DNA of 64,000 nucleotides from Adineta vaga (lineage: Eukaryota > Animalia > Rotifera). The stretch lies in the NCBI GenBank assembly GCA_021613535.1, contig CP075494.1, positions 12,710,001-12,774,000 on the forward strand, given 5' to 3'. The notes under the pieces were generated by a model. The model had not been told where the DNA came from and ran no database searches. It was given only the letters and a program-made list of their open reading frames with translations. Shown here piece after piece: positions 57,695-64,000 of the stretch. Numbering within the stretch: the first letter of the stretch is position 1; every line of letters begins with the position of its first letter. Made by a program: the position numbers and the translations under genes.

Positions 57695-58673
57695 TTAATT
57701 TCGTATAATTAAATAGAGATGTTCTTCTACTCGTCGTAATCTTTGATTATTATGTTGATTAAATTCTACCGTTGTATCAATAATTTCAACAAGTTCAATG
57801 GTACATGATGAACCTATAAAATTCGAATATGAAATTGATTATGTATTATAAAGAATAATTACCAAACAATTGATCTATATCAGTTGTAGTCACACGATGA
57901 GGAGGACCTGTAAATAAAGGAATTAAATGAATATCAATAGATCAAATGTACAAACCAGTGAAATCTAAATCATCATAATAACTAGCAAGAAGATAAAGTC
58001 GTGTATGTTTTGGTGTCATTATTTGTAAAAGAATATCTCGATATCTAGAATGAGAACAAGTAGTTTTGACAAAGATTGAAAATCTATACCAACTGTTGTC
58101 GATCTGAAACATTAATTGCTACGAATCCACCGCGATCAAAAATCCAATCAATAGTTGGTAATGGGCTATAGATATATTTTATTTATTCAAGCAAAATTAG
58201 TTTAGAAAAATAGTTACCGATTGAACGTAAAAAAATCCATACAAAAAATTGTGACAGAACGATCAATACCCTAAATTAATAGGTGAATTAATGAGATAAT
58301 CAATTTCTTGTAGTTACTTGATAAATTTGACATCTATTATTCTCATCAGTTTCAATTTCATGCGTAATATTATTTTCTTCGAAAAATGCTTCCACACCTA
58401 ATTGAATATATTCAATACCAATAACTTGATGACCAGCATCTAGTGCTGCCTTCATGTCAACTGTTTTACCACACAGAGGAAATAAAATACATTGTCGTTG
58501 ATTCAGATTTGTTATTTTTGAAAGTATATGTTTATCAAAATGTCTTTAAAATAATACCACGTAGATTAAATTAATCAAATGAGAATTTACTTATTTATAG
58601 TCAATCGATTGAATCCAATCTTACCGAAAAGCCATCGATCATTCCAGTAAGACTGATCAACTACTTTTGGCAT
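57695..58673 (-). CDS. TPMT: Thiopurine S-methyltransferase family SAM-dependent methyltransferase, multi-exon (absent from the ORF track)
   Basis: MPKVVDQSYWNDRW..GKIGF, ILFPLCGKTVDM...GHQVIGIE, FFEEN, IFCMDFF, WIFDRGGFVAIN..DRQQY, GPPH.V, EEHLYLI*. Confidence 0.92.
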
Positions 58674-59339: not shown

Positions 59340-60129
59340 CGTCATCGTCGATGACTCGGTATTCTGAATGTAAGAAATACCGTTCTTATATGGTTAGACA
59401 ATAATGTCGACAAAAATAATGAAAATTACAAAACATACAATTAATCAAAACTATTATAGATCGTAAGAATTTTATAATTATTTCGACTACACTTGAAAAT
59501 CAAAGATATTTTCACAAAAATAACATCTAATTTTGAACCTCTCTAACGAACTGCTCAACGATGTGAACAAAATGCAGTATGCATGAGTTTTGTGAGGACG
59601 GGGAAAAACTTGGATCAACTCAATTCATCTTTTGTGAACACACAAATTCTGAAAGAAACATTATTCACTATTAACTTCGATGACAAACACATTCGAGAAT
59701 ACGTAGAATGTTGTCGCTAGATTTTTGCTAATAATCCAAAAGAATTGAAAAATATCATCATAGAAAATCCATCTGATGATATTCCTCTGATTGTTTCTTA
59801 TTTTCCATCCATCGATAGATTGAACAACTGCATAGCGAACAGCATAGGGTGGTACAAACTAGGTTTAGTATCACTTAGATTGGATCAAAAAAGAAATGGC
59901 TGAAGAATTTTTTAAGAGACTCCGTAATAAGACAACAATTGAAAATGAAAAGGCTACAAACTCTATGCAACTTAGTATGATCAAGCACAAGCAAGGAGAA
60001 TATCAAGAAGCAGTAATGCTCATTGAAGAATCGATTAATACGTACGAAATTATGTTTCTTGAGAATCATCCTGAATTGGCCATGCCCTATGACAATATTG
60101 GCCTCGTATATGAAGAAATAAATGACTGA
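59340..60129 (+). pseudogene. Decayed, internally deleted member of the 'WLD'-domain/ART/TPR protein family
   Basis: NTVLIWLDNNVDKNNE (WLD at 59391-59399), AQRCEQNAVCMSF...KNLDQLNSSFVNTQILKETLFTINFDDKHIREYVECCR*IFANNPKELKNI (in-frame TAG 59718-59720), then GWYKLG, a frameshift near 59890 and a TPR (QGEYQEAV...HPELAMPYDNIGLVY). Confidence 0.75.
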
Positions 60130-60521
60130 TTCTATTTATGTACTCTTCAATTGAATATATTGAAGAATATTTCACCGATAAAACGTGCCTTCATATTTTT
60201 GAGAGTAGTCACCTTCCTTCTTATTCTTCTATATAAGTAAGTGGTTTTTTTTGGTTTCTCTTCGTATCTTGTGTGTCATAAATAAAATATTTGTGTCGGT
60301 TTTGTAAACGTGTGACACATCGTAGTATACTGATTACAAAAAAAAACAACGCATGCCTTGTGTCTCATAGGTTTCAACCTCGTTTCTGAGTCAATTTTAT
60401 TTACTGAGTTAATAAGAATGACACATTATATTCATTTATGCATTAAATCATGTGAAATTGATCATCTAGATTGTCTCGTAACGTTTTCGAGGAAAATAAA
60501 TATATTGCATGATACTTATTA

Positions 60522-60548
<27 letters not shown>
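60522..60548. repeat. (TA)n microsatellite just upstream of the 60589 ORF
   Basis: Perfect AT dinucleotide run. Confidence 0.9.
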
Positions 60549-60552
<4 letters not shown>

Positions 60553-60588
60553 CGATTCGTTACATCAGTATCTATCAACATAATTTCA

Positions 60589-61143
60589 ATGGCATTAACT
60601 GATCGTGTTCAAATTATTTGGTTAGGTGTTTATGTTCCTGAAGATGCTGGATGTTACGCCTTTGAACGAATATCAAACAGTGCATCTAATGTAACATATG
60701 CTCGTACGTTTATTTCAATTATAGAAGAAAATGTTGGTCGAATTCTGTTCGTTCATAATTATCAGAGAGCATTGGAATTGATCAGAACTCATTGTGACAA
60801 ACAAATTATTTTTATTGCATCAGATTGTCTTGATCAAGATACGATATCGTCGATTCAAGTGGATTATCCAAATATTTATAGATTCTACATCTTTTCACAC
60901 AACATCACTTGTCATAATCAAATCAGCTCAAATGAAAGATGTCATTTGAAGATCTTCGATAAAGAAACGGATTTACTTGTTCAAGCGTTATGTGATATGT
61001 CGAATGATATAATTAAACAAGTTGAAATGTGTTTAGAAACAAATGATTTAAAACAAGGATTTCATTTTTTAAAATATTCATTAATTTTAACTATGAAATT
61101 AACTGAATTTAATACGAAAATGTATCTGACAATGTTAAATTAA
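60589..61143 (+). CDS. Stand-alone 'WLD'-type domain protein, paralogue 1 (most divergent, 184 aa)
   Basis: Uninterrupted ORF; IIWLG, KQIIFIASD, FYIFS, KIFDKETDLLVQ align with the downstream paralogues. Confidence 0.7.
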   Translation: MALTDRVQIIWLGVYVPEDAGCYAFERISNSASNVTYARTFISIIEENVGRILFVHNYQRALELIRTHCDKQIIFIASDCLDQDTISSIQVDYPNIYRFYIFSHNITCHNQISSNERCHLKIFDKETDLLVQALCDMSNDIIKQVEMCLETNDLKQGFHFLKYSLILTMKLTEFNTKMYLTMLN

Positions 61144-61304
61144 TTGTTGGAAAAATCACAAGGCCATCTATAAACATAAGCAAATCATGTTTGTTTTCTT
61201 TTTCGTTTTTCAATGAAATTTATCGTATAGCTGAGTACGTTTTCGTGACGCTAGAAGAACAAGAAAAATAATAACGTCATCATAATCAGATGAAAATGTG
61301 AGTT

Positions 61305-61315
61305 GGATTTTTCCC
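61305..61315 (-). promoter_or_regulatory. kappaB-like (Rel/Dorsal-type) site upstream of paralogue 2
   Basis: GGATTTTTCCC, reverse complement GGGAAAAATCC. Confidence 0.35.
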
Positions 61316-61560
61316 TCGTACAAGTTTTTCTTCCGGAAAAAATTATGCAAATATCTAATTTAAACTTATTTTTGAGGATGCCCAAGATAAAAATATGCTT
61401 AAAAATATATTACTCATATTTAGTTGGCAAAATTAGTCATTAATCCATAGTTTAAATACAATCGTCTTACGGATAAAAATGGTATATTAAGAGCTACTTT
61501 TCGAGAGCACAACTATGTTTGTATCTTATTTTCATTGATTCTTTTCTGTTTTAGATAAAG

Positions 61561-62274
61561 ATGTCCAATGCTGTACATGCATCTAGTGAAGAAATACCTA
61601 ATCATATTATCGTTTGGCTCGATTTATATATTGGAGATCCAGACAAATATGAAATTTTAAAAGCAGCTTTTTCCACTACAACTGATCCAAATCATAACGA
61701 TCCTATACCATTGTTTGACAAAAATTTGTCAGAAATCTATCGTACTGTGGGTTTTGAAGGTGTAACATTTTCATTAGCAGCCTTCACAAATGTTGAACGT
61801 TGTGTAGAATTTTTACTAGCAAACGAACATCGAAAGATCTTTATGATAACATCCGGTCAAATGGGACGTGCAGTTTTACCATTAATTGCATTTAAATGTC
61901 AAGATGTTTTTGCTGATCGAGAAACGAAAAAACTCTGTCAACATATATATGTTTTTTGTCATAGTATCAAACGTAATATGGATTGGATGATAGACTACAC
62001 TGAGTATATCGCATCTTCATTCGTTTTTGAAAAAGATTTATTAGTACGTATGATATTTGATATTGCCAATTATTTTTTATCGAAAGGTAAACGTTTATTT
62101 GAGAGTGGATCTCAAAATTATCCAACTGCTCTTATTCATCTCACTTGGGTACGTACTCTTTATGATCGATATCGAACATTGCAAACGGTTCAGTTATTAA
62201 AAGAATTTGCCGAAGTTGATAGACTTATTGAACAAGTAGAAAATGCAATGAGAACATTGGACGATGAAGAATAA
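61561..62274 (+). CDS. Stand-alone 'WLD'-type domain protein, paralogue 2 (237 aa)
   Basis: Uninterrupted ORF; IPNHIIVWLDLYIG.P..Y..LK.AF, RKIFMITSGQMG, HIYVFC, DW..DY, FEKDLLVR; probable 5'-UTR intron 61482-61554. Confidence 0.8.
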   Translation: MSNAVHASSEEIPNHIIVWLDLYIGDPDKYEILKAAFSTTTDPNHNDPIPLFDKNLSEIYRTVGFEGVTFSLAAFTNVERCVEFLLANEHRKIFMITSGQMGRAVLPLIAFKCQDVFADRETKKLCQHIYVFCHSIKRNMDWMIDYTEYIASSFVFEKDLLVRMIFDIANYFLSKGKRLFESGSQNYPTALIHLTWVRTLYDRYRTLQTVQLLKEFAEVDRLIEQVENAMRTLDDEE

Positions 62275-62474
62275 TTTATCAGGAATTCTTTTTATAAGAA
62301 AAAAATATCTTGTTTTTCTTGTAATAAAAATATAAATTCTATCTCATACTTTCTACCAATTCATTTCTCTTCACGATTGAATTATGAAACAGAAAATGAA
62401 TGATTAAATATGATACATTTTATCAAAAAAAAAACACAGAAGTACTTGCATGTTTTTATTGGATACAGTATGTT

Positions 62475-62484
62475 GGAAATTCCC
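62475..62484 (-). promoter_or_regulatory. Canonical NF-kappaB consensus site upstream of paralogue 3
   Basis: GGAAATTCCC, reverse complement GGGAATTTCC, a full match to GGGRNNYYCC, about 135 nt before the ATG. Confidence 0.5.
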
Positions 62485-62617
62485 AACTTAACATTATTTT
62501 CTTACAATAAATTCTCATGCGTCTTTTTTACGCGCATCATTGATAAAAATTGGTAAGTATGCAAATGTTTTCTTCTTCCTCTTCTCAGCGTATAACTGAT
62601 TTCAGAATAATTCCACG

Positions 62618-63415
62618 ATGGCTGAATTAAGACTAGAAATTCCTGATGATCATGATTATCCTGCACCAGATCATATGATTATTTGGCTTGATGATCATAT
62701 TGGCAAACCAAATGAATATAAGAAAATTAAAAGCGCATTCAGTAGTAATATCGATCCTCGACACCAAACTTGGACAACATTAACTGATCCTGATTATGAG
62801 AAACTTGTTCAAGAAAATAATGCTAAATCAGTACGCTTTGCTGACATTCCCATGCTTTTATTAACATGCGACAATATTATAAAATGTTATGAGGCATTTG
62901 AAGCGAATAAAGACAGACATATTTATTTTATTACATCTGGAACTTTGGGTAAATTTATTATACCAAGACTTATTGAAAGACATCAACAGCTGTTCAAAGA
63001 TCCAATTACTAAAAAACCTTATTCTTCAATCTATATATTCTGTGGATATACTGTACATCATTATGAATGGTTGGTGGATTTTCGAGACCACGTACAAGTA
63101 TTCGATCATGAAGATATTTTATTAGCACGTTTAACACACGATGTTGCTCAAAATTTTGTCGAACAAGGTGAATATTGTATCAACGAATCTCTTGCTCGAT
63201 TTCAACGATCAAAAAAAGTTTTAAATCGTTATTTAGCAATGGGTGAAGTTTGTGCGAGCGATCTGGAACATGTGGAAAAAATGATAGCAAATGTTGAGCG
63301 AATTTTGAAACCAAATATAGCCAATCCTCATGTAGAAGATAGTATTATTGTTGATAATATTATTCAGCAAAATAATGACGATGATAATGTACAAGTAAGT
63401 CAAGCAACCAGCTAA
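62618..63415 (+). CDS. Stand-alone 'WLD'-type domain protein, paralogue 3 (265 aa)
   Basis: Uninterrupted ORF; APDHMIIWLDDHIG.P..Y..IK.AF, RHIYFITSGTLG, SIYIFC, EW..DF, FDHEDILLAR; probable 5'-UTR intron starting at 62553. Confidence 0.8.
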   Translation: MAELRLEIPDDHDYPAPDHMIIWLDDHIGKPNEYKKIKSAFSSNIDPRHQTWTTLTDPDYEKLVQENNAKSVRFADIPMLLLTCDNIIKCYEAFEANKDRHIYFITSGTLGKFIIPRLIERHQQLFKDPITKKPYSSIYIFCGYTVHHYEWLVDFRDHVQVFDHEDILLARLTHDVAQNFVEQGEYCINESLARFQRSKKVLNRYLAMGEVCASDLEHVEKMIANVERILKPNIANPHVEDSIIVDNIIQQNNDDDNVQVSQATS

Positions 63416-63832
63416 TAGATTTATCTTGTATCGCTATCTTTTCTTGATAAACAATAAATATTGTGTGTTTAGTTTGTCTGTAGTGTTCTATTTCTTATTT
63501 TAATAAATTATAAATAGAAAAACATCGCCGATAGCATTCGACATTGTTCTTATTATCATATGCATTTCAAGAAAATCTTCTTCATGATTCTATCTTTCAT
63601 GAAATTTCATAGATATTGAATAAAACTCGTTTTCGATTGTTGGTATCTTCCAACATAATTTCACGTGTTATGTATAACCACGAATAATGTTTTTTTCTTT
63701 TCTTTTTCTTCTTGTTATTGCTGACGCATAGTTATTTTTGTTGATTATGATAAAAAATATTAACCAATAGATTCTTTTCACTTTTCTATCAAGTATTTTT
63801 TTTTTGTTTTCTTTTTGAGGTTTCAATCTACA

Positions 63833-64000
63833 ATGGCTGCATCGTTAAACTCTAGATTTGTACCTGATTTTGTTATTGTTTGGTTAGATGGTAATGTAGC
63901 TCAAATTCGAAACAATGTTTCGAGTAAAACAGATTTAGCTAATAATGCTAATCTAAATGCTGCACCAACAAACAATCGTTCTCATGATATTGATAATTTT
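63833..64000 (+). CDS. 'WLD'-type domain protein, paralogue 4 (runs off the window)
   Basis: MAASLNSRFVPDFVIVWLDGNVAQIRNNVSSKTDLANNANLNAAPTNNRSHDIDNF, open to the edge; shares the PDxxIxWLD start. Confidence 0.7.
   Translation, partial: MAASLNSRFVPDFVIVWLDGNVAQIRNNVSSKTDLANNANLNAAPTNNRSHDIDNF

Follow-up and report, generated by a model that had tools for sequence, protein, structure and literature searches.

Close to one end of a 64,000-nucleotide stretch of the Adineta vaga genome (C5:12710001-12774000, hereafter the window, in an assembly of 100.8 Mb in six contigs), four co-oriented genes each encode a small domain that is here named WLD, after the motif in its first β-strand. Judged by sequence profiles, more than 100 ADP-ribosyltransferase (ART)-TPR proteins in this genome begin with the same α/β core, and structure prediction gives this core the shape of a bacterial receiver domain in which the phosphotransfer residues are replaced. 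The explanation favored here, which is drawn by analogy and held with about even confidence, is that WLD is a regulatory module, shaped like a receiver but non-phosphorylatable, and that its free forms may modulate their ART-TPR paralogs.

The relationship between the four open reading frames (ORFs; Table 1) was recovered unevenly by pairwise comparison: ORF2 and ORF3 share 29% identity (E = 5e-35), and the match between ORF1 and ORF2 is marginal (E = 0.038). A hidden Markov model (HMM) that excluded every ORF of the window, and drew instead on 59 family members of other loci and species, was run against the 226 six-frame ORFs of the window. This model matched ORF3 (E = 8e-63), ORF2 (E = 8.6e-61), ORF4 (E = 5.6e-46) and ORF1 (E = 5.8e-26), with the next best ORF at E = 0.05. 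All four belong to the WLD family, and the motifs listed in a preliminary description of the window are all present. In the alignment the four share the I(I/V)WL(D/G) start, I(F/I)xI(T/A/V)S(G/D), (I/F)Y(I/V)F(C/S) and the helix motif that follows. In a FastTree phylogeny of 77 members (no support values displayed), each of the four genes belongs to a different stand-alone subclade; this indicates an old array, and neither a recent burst nor a set of truncations.

No Pfam, NCBIfam or PADLOC model matched the four ORFs, which thus match no characterized family. A word search with ORF3 returned 19 relatives of similar length, all uncharacterized, and those with names came from Adineta or Rotaria only. 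A profile search of 1.84 billion representatives returned 951 proteins at E ≤ 1e-3, including 61 at E ≤ 1e-30; the named members that were looked up were all from bdelloids (Adineta, Rotaria and Didymodactylos). The ESM-Atlas neighbors, by shape and by features, were rotifer clusters, and a feature search limited to named clusters other than TPR or ART gave no usable match. Among the 185,579 species genomes of bacteria and archaea that were scanned with a pattern, 29 stretches matched and none was confirmed, a result that is only weakly negative. The WLD domain is thus specific to bdelloid rotifers, lacks a Pfam model and is hitherto undescribed. In the library searched, no paper joined rotifers, ADP-ribosyltransferase and TPR, and the conflict-system surveys of the Aravind laboratory mention neither rotifers nor a WLD domain. 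TPR is listed, without further treatment, among the bdelloid gene expansions (PMC3846280).

The family profile matched at least 147 places in this genome. About two dozen were full-length matches in frames of 200-280 residues, corresponding to stand-alone genes, and more than 100 others covered the core only (profile positions ~73-160) and lay at the start of frames of 480-1580 residues. Several of the stand-alone genes lie in other tandem sets, for example three in a row on C2 (4655675-4658250, minus strand) and, on C5 (4907725-4912500, minus strand), a set with two copies of 97% protein identity and a synonymous divergence (dS) of 0.05; duplication is therefore ongoing.

The architecture of the long frames was examined in eight sampled cases. 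TPR_12 arrays were present in all eight and ART or ADPrib_exo_Tox matches in five, and the ART matches were always downstream of the WLD core, between it and the TPRs. The structural neighbors in the ESM-Atlas were likewise rotifer clusters named ADP-ribosyltransferase/TPR. The N-terminal domains of the ART-TPR proteins, which are currently annotated only as ‘ADP ribosyltransferase domain-containing’ or ‘kinesin light chain’, share with the free proteins the core and the motifs IIWLD, IFxIxSGxxG..P, IYIFC and W, with E-values down to 1e-13 per exon match. The preliminary description had raised the possibility that enzymes carry the same domain, and the genome profile search and Pfam scans both place the WLD core at the head of ART-TPR proteins.

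The free and fused forms have the same motifs and align from β1 to β5, beyond which they differ. The fused form lacks any insert between β1 and β2, is compact, and continues into the ART and TPR regions, whereas most free forms carry an insert of ~45 residues between β1 and β2 and continue into a DLLxRLxRD helix and a hairpin. In the 77-member tree, seven fused N-domains form one long-branched clade, separate from the stand-alone members. The only match in the PADLOC and NCBIfam searches was of residues 92-178 of one ART-TPR protein (L036:3868-4467, minus strand), from β4 onward, to the PADLOC model SspC (E = 4.8e-5, 19 bits); it is probably due to chance and the identification was rejected.

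Other arrangements of the domain were also seen. Some members (P0056, an A. vaga protein of 307 residues, and P0112, P0123 and P0127) have ~100 extra N-terminal residues ahead of IIWLD, which in P0056 may, as judged by eye, resemble a ubiquitin-like domain. An ESM-Atlas cluster of 473 residues, with a U-box in 83% of its members together with zf-Nse, aligned with the ORF3 model at a TM score of 0.51 over 182 residues, and is possibly a WLD-like domain joined to an E3 ligase domain; the family members P0065, P0074 and P0100, which are comparable to this cluster in length, gave no Pfam match.

The fold was predicted with AlphaFold2 for two different paralogs. The ORF3 model, from an alignment of 14 sequences, had a predicted local distance difference test score (pLDDT) of 75.4 and a predicted template modeling score (pTM) of 0.70; its strands include β1 at residues 19-24 (IIWLD), β3 at 101-106 (IYFITS), β4 at 138-141 (IYIF) and β5 at 159-162, followed by a helical hairpin (165-230) and a disordered acidic tail. 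The ORF1 model, from an alignment of 77 sequences, scored higher (pLDDT 87.5, pTM 0.84), with strands at residues 7-12, 52-55, 72-78, 96-102 and 120-123 that alternate with helices in a (βα)5 order and are followed by three helices. The two independent models agree with the strand assignment made earlier from the motifs, with IIWLD as β1, IFxITS as β3 and IYxFC as β4. WLD is accordingly predicted to be a five-stranded (βα)5 flavodoxin-like sandwich that is superposable on CheY and closest in geometry to bacterial receivers, followed by a helical hairpin.

Comparison of the models with known structures supported this shape in part. With neither model did Foldseek return a PDB match at E ≤ 0.001; the best E was 0.011, which for ORF1 was the match to the response regulator PorX, and the other weak matches were to mixed α/β folds. 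When the models were aligned exhaustively with VIA to 48,161 chains, most of the top 50 in both cases were receiver domains, and other flavodoxin-like entries included a lysine decarboxylase chain and a B12-binding subunit. The receiver-shaped (βα)5 fold with its hairpin, which the preliminary description had anticipated, is thus what AlphaFold2 predicts, and the Foldseek comparison adds no significant match to it. The C-terminal hairpin (ORF3 ~165-230) gave weak single TPR_2 or TPR_1 matches in 8 of 63 members, and the family profile weakly matched designed consensus-TPR proteins in the PDB; the hairpin of the stand-alone proteins may be a degenerate TPR-like unit.

Homology with receiver domains (REC), as opposed to similarity of shape, was sought at the sequence level. 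The Pfam REC model (PF00072) matched neither the ORFs nor 63 family members at E ≤ 10, and found nothing in the six-frame translation of the whole genome at E ≤ 1 in a search that was positive in 12 of 14 control genomes. Family profiles run against the PDB returned no REC chain at E ≤ 10, the sole weak matches being to TPR-like and helical proteins and lying on the C-terminal hairpin. A REC profile, of modest size, was built from 15 sequences (CheY, CheB, NarP, RcsB, AtoC, CreB, ArcA, EvgA, PyrR, NarL, RssB, BasR and DcuR of E. coli K-12 and two CheY orthologs), and its comparison with WLD in HHalign, run without secondary-structure scoring, gave a probability of 0.4-0.5% (E = 0.13-0.17) over 24-25 out-of-register columns. 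As all sequence-level tests were negative, the term ‘receiver-like’ used in the preliminary description describes a shape, and not a demonstrated homology.

The positions of the receiver active site were nevertheless compared by strand. In the REC alignment D13, D57 and K109 (CheY numbering) are invariant. The first Asp after β1, corresponding to the acidic pair of REC (CheY D12, D13), is present in 96% of the 77 WLD members, although it is Gly in ORF1, and the residue that follows it varies (D, L, G, T and others). The phospho-acceptor position at the end of β3 (CheY D57) is Ser in 76 of the 77 members, a replacement that had been suspected for ORF2 and ORF3 from the ITSG motif. It had also been proposed that ORF1 keeps the acceptor Asp, in its IASD motif; that Asp is instead one position later, in place of a conserved Gly, and the β1 Asp of ORF1 is lost too. 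The Thr/Ser at the end of β4 (CheY T87) is Cys in 84% of members and Ser in ORF1, and the WLD alignment, with a conserved Phe in the β5 region, has no conserved Lys after it (CheY K109). The β1 Asp is therefore the only one of the five receiver active-site residues that the family retains. With Ser at the acceptor position, Cys for the β4 Thr and no β5 Lys, canonical phosphotransfer is effectively excluded.

In place of the receiver residues the family has a signature of its own. Among the 77 members this comprises Trp (99%), Leu and Asp (96%) after β1; Ser (99%), Gly (74%), two variable positions, Gly (92%) and Pro (87%) after β3; Tyr (88%), a variable position, Phe (87%) and Cys (84%) at β4; and Trp (88%) in α4, with LLxRLxRD in α5 of the free forms. 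The signature residues are all at strand ends or loop starts. The Trp-Leu-Asp, Ser-Gly-x-x-Gly...Pro and Tyr-x-Phe-Cys groups are predicted to line a conserved pocket where the strands of the sheet end C-terminally, on the face that is phosphorylated in receivers, a clustering deduced from secondary-structure positions and not from coordinates. The signature is complete in ORF2 and ORF3, and ORF4 lacks only the Pro. Of the signature, ORF1 retains W, S, Y and F, whereas six residues (D, G, G, P, C and W) are lost.

Evidence for expression was sought in contigs from three runs of two studies, labeled ‘RNA? (a guess)’, in which the contigs total 27-36 Mb, against 147 Mb in a DNA run. Gene-sized RNA-like contigs were found in all three runs for ORF2 (61553-62386, 61555-62346 and 61554-62284) and ORF3 (62560-63540, 62613-63530 and 62612-63427, the last in two pieces), and those for ORF4 begin at 63820, 63821 and 63834 and extend past the window. 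Coverage of ORF1 was restricted to thin, low fragments (60639-61087). The intergenic bins 60300-60547, 62408-62531 and 63648-63771 were empty in the three runs, whereas in the DNA run a single contig crosses nearly the entire stretch (60559-64000). The RNA-like contigs are colinear with the genome, with no joints or indels, in agreement with the intronless structure first read from the ORFs. This pattern is consistent with a separate intronless mRNA for each of the four genes, with a very short 5' untranslated region, and with weak expression of ORF1; the ORFs appear to be transcribed.

The free genes are also conserved in position and sequence. The corresponding A. ricciae locus contains a minus-strand TPMT gene, a WLD-TPR gene (663 residues), orthologs of ORF2, ORF3 and ORF4 (61%, 60% and 53% identity, the first of these over the first 140 residues) and a minus-strand DJ-1 gene. 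In Rotaria, an ORF2 ortholog (54%), an ORF1-like gene of 226 residues (30%) and an ORF3 ortholog (59%) are followed by DJ-1, again on the minus strand; the 226-residue gene is the nearest syntenic relative of ORF1. Pairwise ratios of nonsynonymous to synonymous divergence (dN/dS, Nei-Gojobori), a comparison that the preliminary description had proposed, were 0.32 for ORF2, 0.27-0.30 for ORF3 and 0.26 for ORF4 (0.25-0.32 overall for the ortholog pairs, with dS near saturation), 0.57 for ORF1 and its Rotaria relative, and 0.32-0.41 for two young paralog pairs. The tandem array of free genes is thus old and syntenic, is under constraint, and is probably transcribed.

These observations suggest a role for the domain within the ART-TPR proteins. 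WLD would be the regulatory switch or interaction module of an expanded ART-TPR system, presumably one of a conflict or immunity type. As the same domain heads more than 100 ART-TPR proteins, the free copies, transcribed and under purifying selection, probably regulate those proteins; they would act in trans on the fused domains, whether by partnering them, by competing with them or as decoys, on the model of single-domain paralogs that regulate other modular signaling assemblies. We infer the interaction with ART-TPR proteins, as well as any ligand or modification of the pocket. Several points weigh against this explanation. The trans-regulatory role is suggested by architecture and analogy, and an enzyme or a ligand sensor would account for the conserved Asp/Ser/Cys pocket as well as an interaction surface does. 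The stand-alone clade has an insert and an α5/hairpin of its own that the fused domains lack, and the functions of the free and fused forms may therefore differ. The data themselves carry limits, in that the tree was displayed without support values, the ‘RNA’ label is a guess, the expression data are contigs and not reads and so give neither strand nor level, and the dN/dS values are rough because the dS of the ortholog pairs (0.9-1.5) is near saturation.

A more specific version, which we consider very unlikely, is that the invariant Ser, at the acceptor position of receivers, is a regulated site of phosphorylation, or of ADP-ribosylation by the ART domains of the family itself. In that case an ART-driven eukaryotic relay, analogous to two-component signaling, would have the WLD domains as its receivers and the free, tandem-encoded proteins as its diffusible response elements. 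If true, this would represent an independently evolved receiver-shaped switch, with a different chemistry, in an animal.

The alternative explanations differ in what they make of the pocket and of the fold. WLD may instead be a sensor of a small molecule or phosphate ligand, or a cryptic enzyme, with a pocket formed by the β1 Asp, the Ser-Gly-x-x-Gly loop at the N-terminus of α3 and the β4 Cys; candidate ligands would be NAD-derived nucleotides that the adjacent ART domains make or use, or the Cys would serve as a nucleophile, and the free proteins would be sensors or hydrolases and not decoys. This is a doubtful but substantial possibility. The near-invariant polar and small residues lie where β1, β3 and β4 end C-terminally, which is the ligand-binding side of flavodoxin-like and Rossmann-like domains, and a Gly-rich loop before a helix, as seen here, is typical of phosphate binding. 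WLD is also fused directly upstream of NAD-using ART domains, and its weak Foldseek neighbors include cobalamin-binding and nucleoside-deoxyribosyltransferase-like flavodoxin folds. However, no enzyme or ligand-binding family was matched in the Pfam, NCBIfam, PADLOC or PDB sequence searches, the spatial clustering of these residues is deduced from secondary-structure positions alone, and ORF1 lacks the Asp, both Gly, the Pro and the Cys, yet is open and well folded in its model. The fold could also be a generic flavodoxin-like arrangement whose true kin are another immune-signaling superfamily of that fold, for example TIR-like or caspase-like, and the lack of REC signal in HHalign and the resemblance of the ART-TPR context to modular immune proteins are both consistent with this. 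In position, the Ser-Gly that follows β3 and the Cys that follows β4 may resemble the SHG and QACxG motifs of caspases, and the weak Foldseek matches mix GTPases, B12-binding domains, DNPH1, one caspase-8 chain and one TIR-NLR chain (the sole one, at E = 0.089 and probability 0.23). Kinship of this sort is unlikely: the caspase His position is Ser/Thr in WLD, the 63 members gave no Pfam TIR or Peptidase_C14 match at E ≤ 10, and the VIA top 50 contained no TIR or caspase chain for either model, most of its rows being REC domains.

Two further alternatives were considered. That the WLD proteins are genuine phospho-accepting receivers of a hidden, horizontally acquired two-component-type pathway has next to no probability. 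The predicted shape is nearest to REC, one acidic residue is kept after β1, and bdelloids carry many foreign genes (PMC3846280, discussion). Set against this are the Ser in place of the acceptor Asp in 99% of members, the Cys at β4 and the missing β5 Lys, the negligible HHalign probability and the absence of PF00072 from a genome searched in the same way as the positive controls; the named relatives, moreover, are all bdelloid, and the prokaryotic pattern scan confirmed none. The array might otherwise consist of non-functional relics, the N-terminal pieces of former ART-TPR genes that are merely still open, as the decayed WLD-TPR gene directly upstream could suggest. For the array as a whole this is highly improbable: ORF2-4 have syntenic orthologs of the same length in two other bdelloids, of the genera Adineta and Rotaria, with low dN/dS, they give gene-sized RNA-like contigs, and the stand-alone proteins have an insert and hairpin that are not found in the ART-TPR N-domains and form a separate clade. 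Restricted to ORF1, which is short, has lost six signature residues and combines weak RNA-like coverage with a dN/dS of 0.57, the relic explanation is possible, if on balance doubtful.

The proposed regulatory module may be compared with known systems. WLD differs from REC in having no sequence or profile similarity to it, in the substitutions of its active-site positions (Ser for Asp, Cys for the β4 Thr/Ser and no β5 Lys), in the 45-residue β1-β2 insert of most stand-alone members, in having a hairpin where REC has an output domain, and in being eukaryotic and restricted to bdelloids. Pseudo-receivers, such as that of CikA (PsR, PDB 2j48) and the atypical orphan regulator 2hqr, are bacterial and recognizable members of the REC family, whereas WLD is not recognizable as REC and has invariant motifs of its own. 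A functional analogy may be drawn with the CARD-only and PYD-only proteins, single-domain proteins that regulate modular immune assemblies: these are free, tandem-encoded copies of a domain that heads large multidomain proteins having effector and repeat regions. They differ in having a death fold in place of the α/β fold of WLD.

Very large, lineage-specific gene expansions with a presumed role in defense are a feature of bdelloids, and the ART-TPR proteins are among these; to our knowledge, they are essentially unstudied. The present analysis defines their shared N-terminal module, for which it provides a residue signature and a predicted fold, and demonstrates about two dozen genes in which the module stands free; these genes are conserved and apparently expressed. 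The module may exemplify the reuse, in an animal, of a receiver-shaped switch with new chemistry. With a curated WLD domain model, close to 1000 ‘hypothetical’ rotifer proteins could be better annotated, and the D/S/C residue signature and the free genes are concrete handles for experiment.

Table 1. The WLD array and adjoining features, from the ORF listing and the DNA past the window. Positions are those of the window, and positions above 64000 are window-equivalent.
Feature	Position	Strand	Description
WLD-TPR remnant	59435-60126	+	fifth family member, decayed, multidomain; upstream of array
ORF1	60589-61143	+	184 residues; single exon; most divergent stand-alone WLD-domain gene (WLG, IASD, YIFS); compact, without β1-β2 insert
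ORF2	61561-62274	+	237 residues; single exon; stand-alone WLD-domain gene with full family signature
ORF3	62618-63415	+	265 residues; single exon; stand-alone WLD-domain gene; acidic disordered C-terminal tail
ORF4	ATG 63833 to 64549 (L002:334-1050)	+	238 residues; single exon; N-terminal 56 codons within window (63833-64000)
DJ-1/PfpI-like gene	64896-65597 (L002:1397-2098)	-	convergent to ORF4; unrelated genes beyond

The boundaries of the array were established from the DNA on either side, in a region with a G+C content of ~30% throughout. Reading beyond position 64000, as the preliminary description had advised, completed ORF4, which ends 549 nt past the window edge. The next gene is the DJ-1/PfpI-like gene on the opposite strand, and the array therefore ends at four. 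The earlier count of ‘at least four’ holds as four intact, related genes, and its lower-bound wording can be dropped, since only remnants are found upstream. When the 663-residue A. ricciae WLD-TPR protein was compared with the remnant by tblastn, it matched in pieces in three reading frames (residues 56-75, 110-197 and 203-257, and one TPR stretch of ~78 residues) that together cover ~240 of its 663 residues. This fifth member is a pseudogene, frameshifted and heavily deleted.

Some minor features of the locus were also noted. Two 18-nt words at the end of ORF1 (61069-61086 and 61191-61208) are common to contigs of another locus and were considered as a possible transposon footprint; this was ruled out, as the words are AT-rich and of low complexity and the genome has no second copy of the 201-nt stretch. 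Both ORF4 and the DJ-1 gene would be spanned by a single RNA-like contig that starts at 63820 and is 1734 nt long, which suggests that their 3' ends abut or overlap. Upstream of the array, a short minus-strand ORF (58300-58455) lies where A. ricciae has its minus-strand TPMT gene (thiopurine methyltransferase, PF05724; L042:676-1654). This arrangement suggests that the block from TPMT to DJ-1 is syntenic between the two Adineta species.

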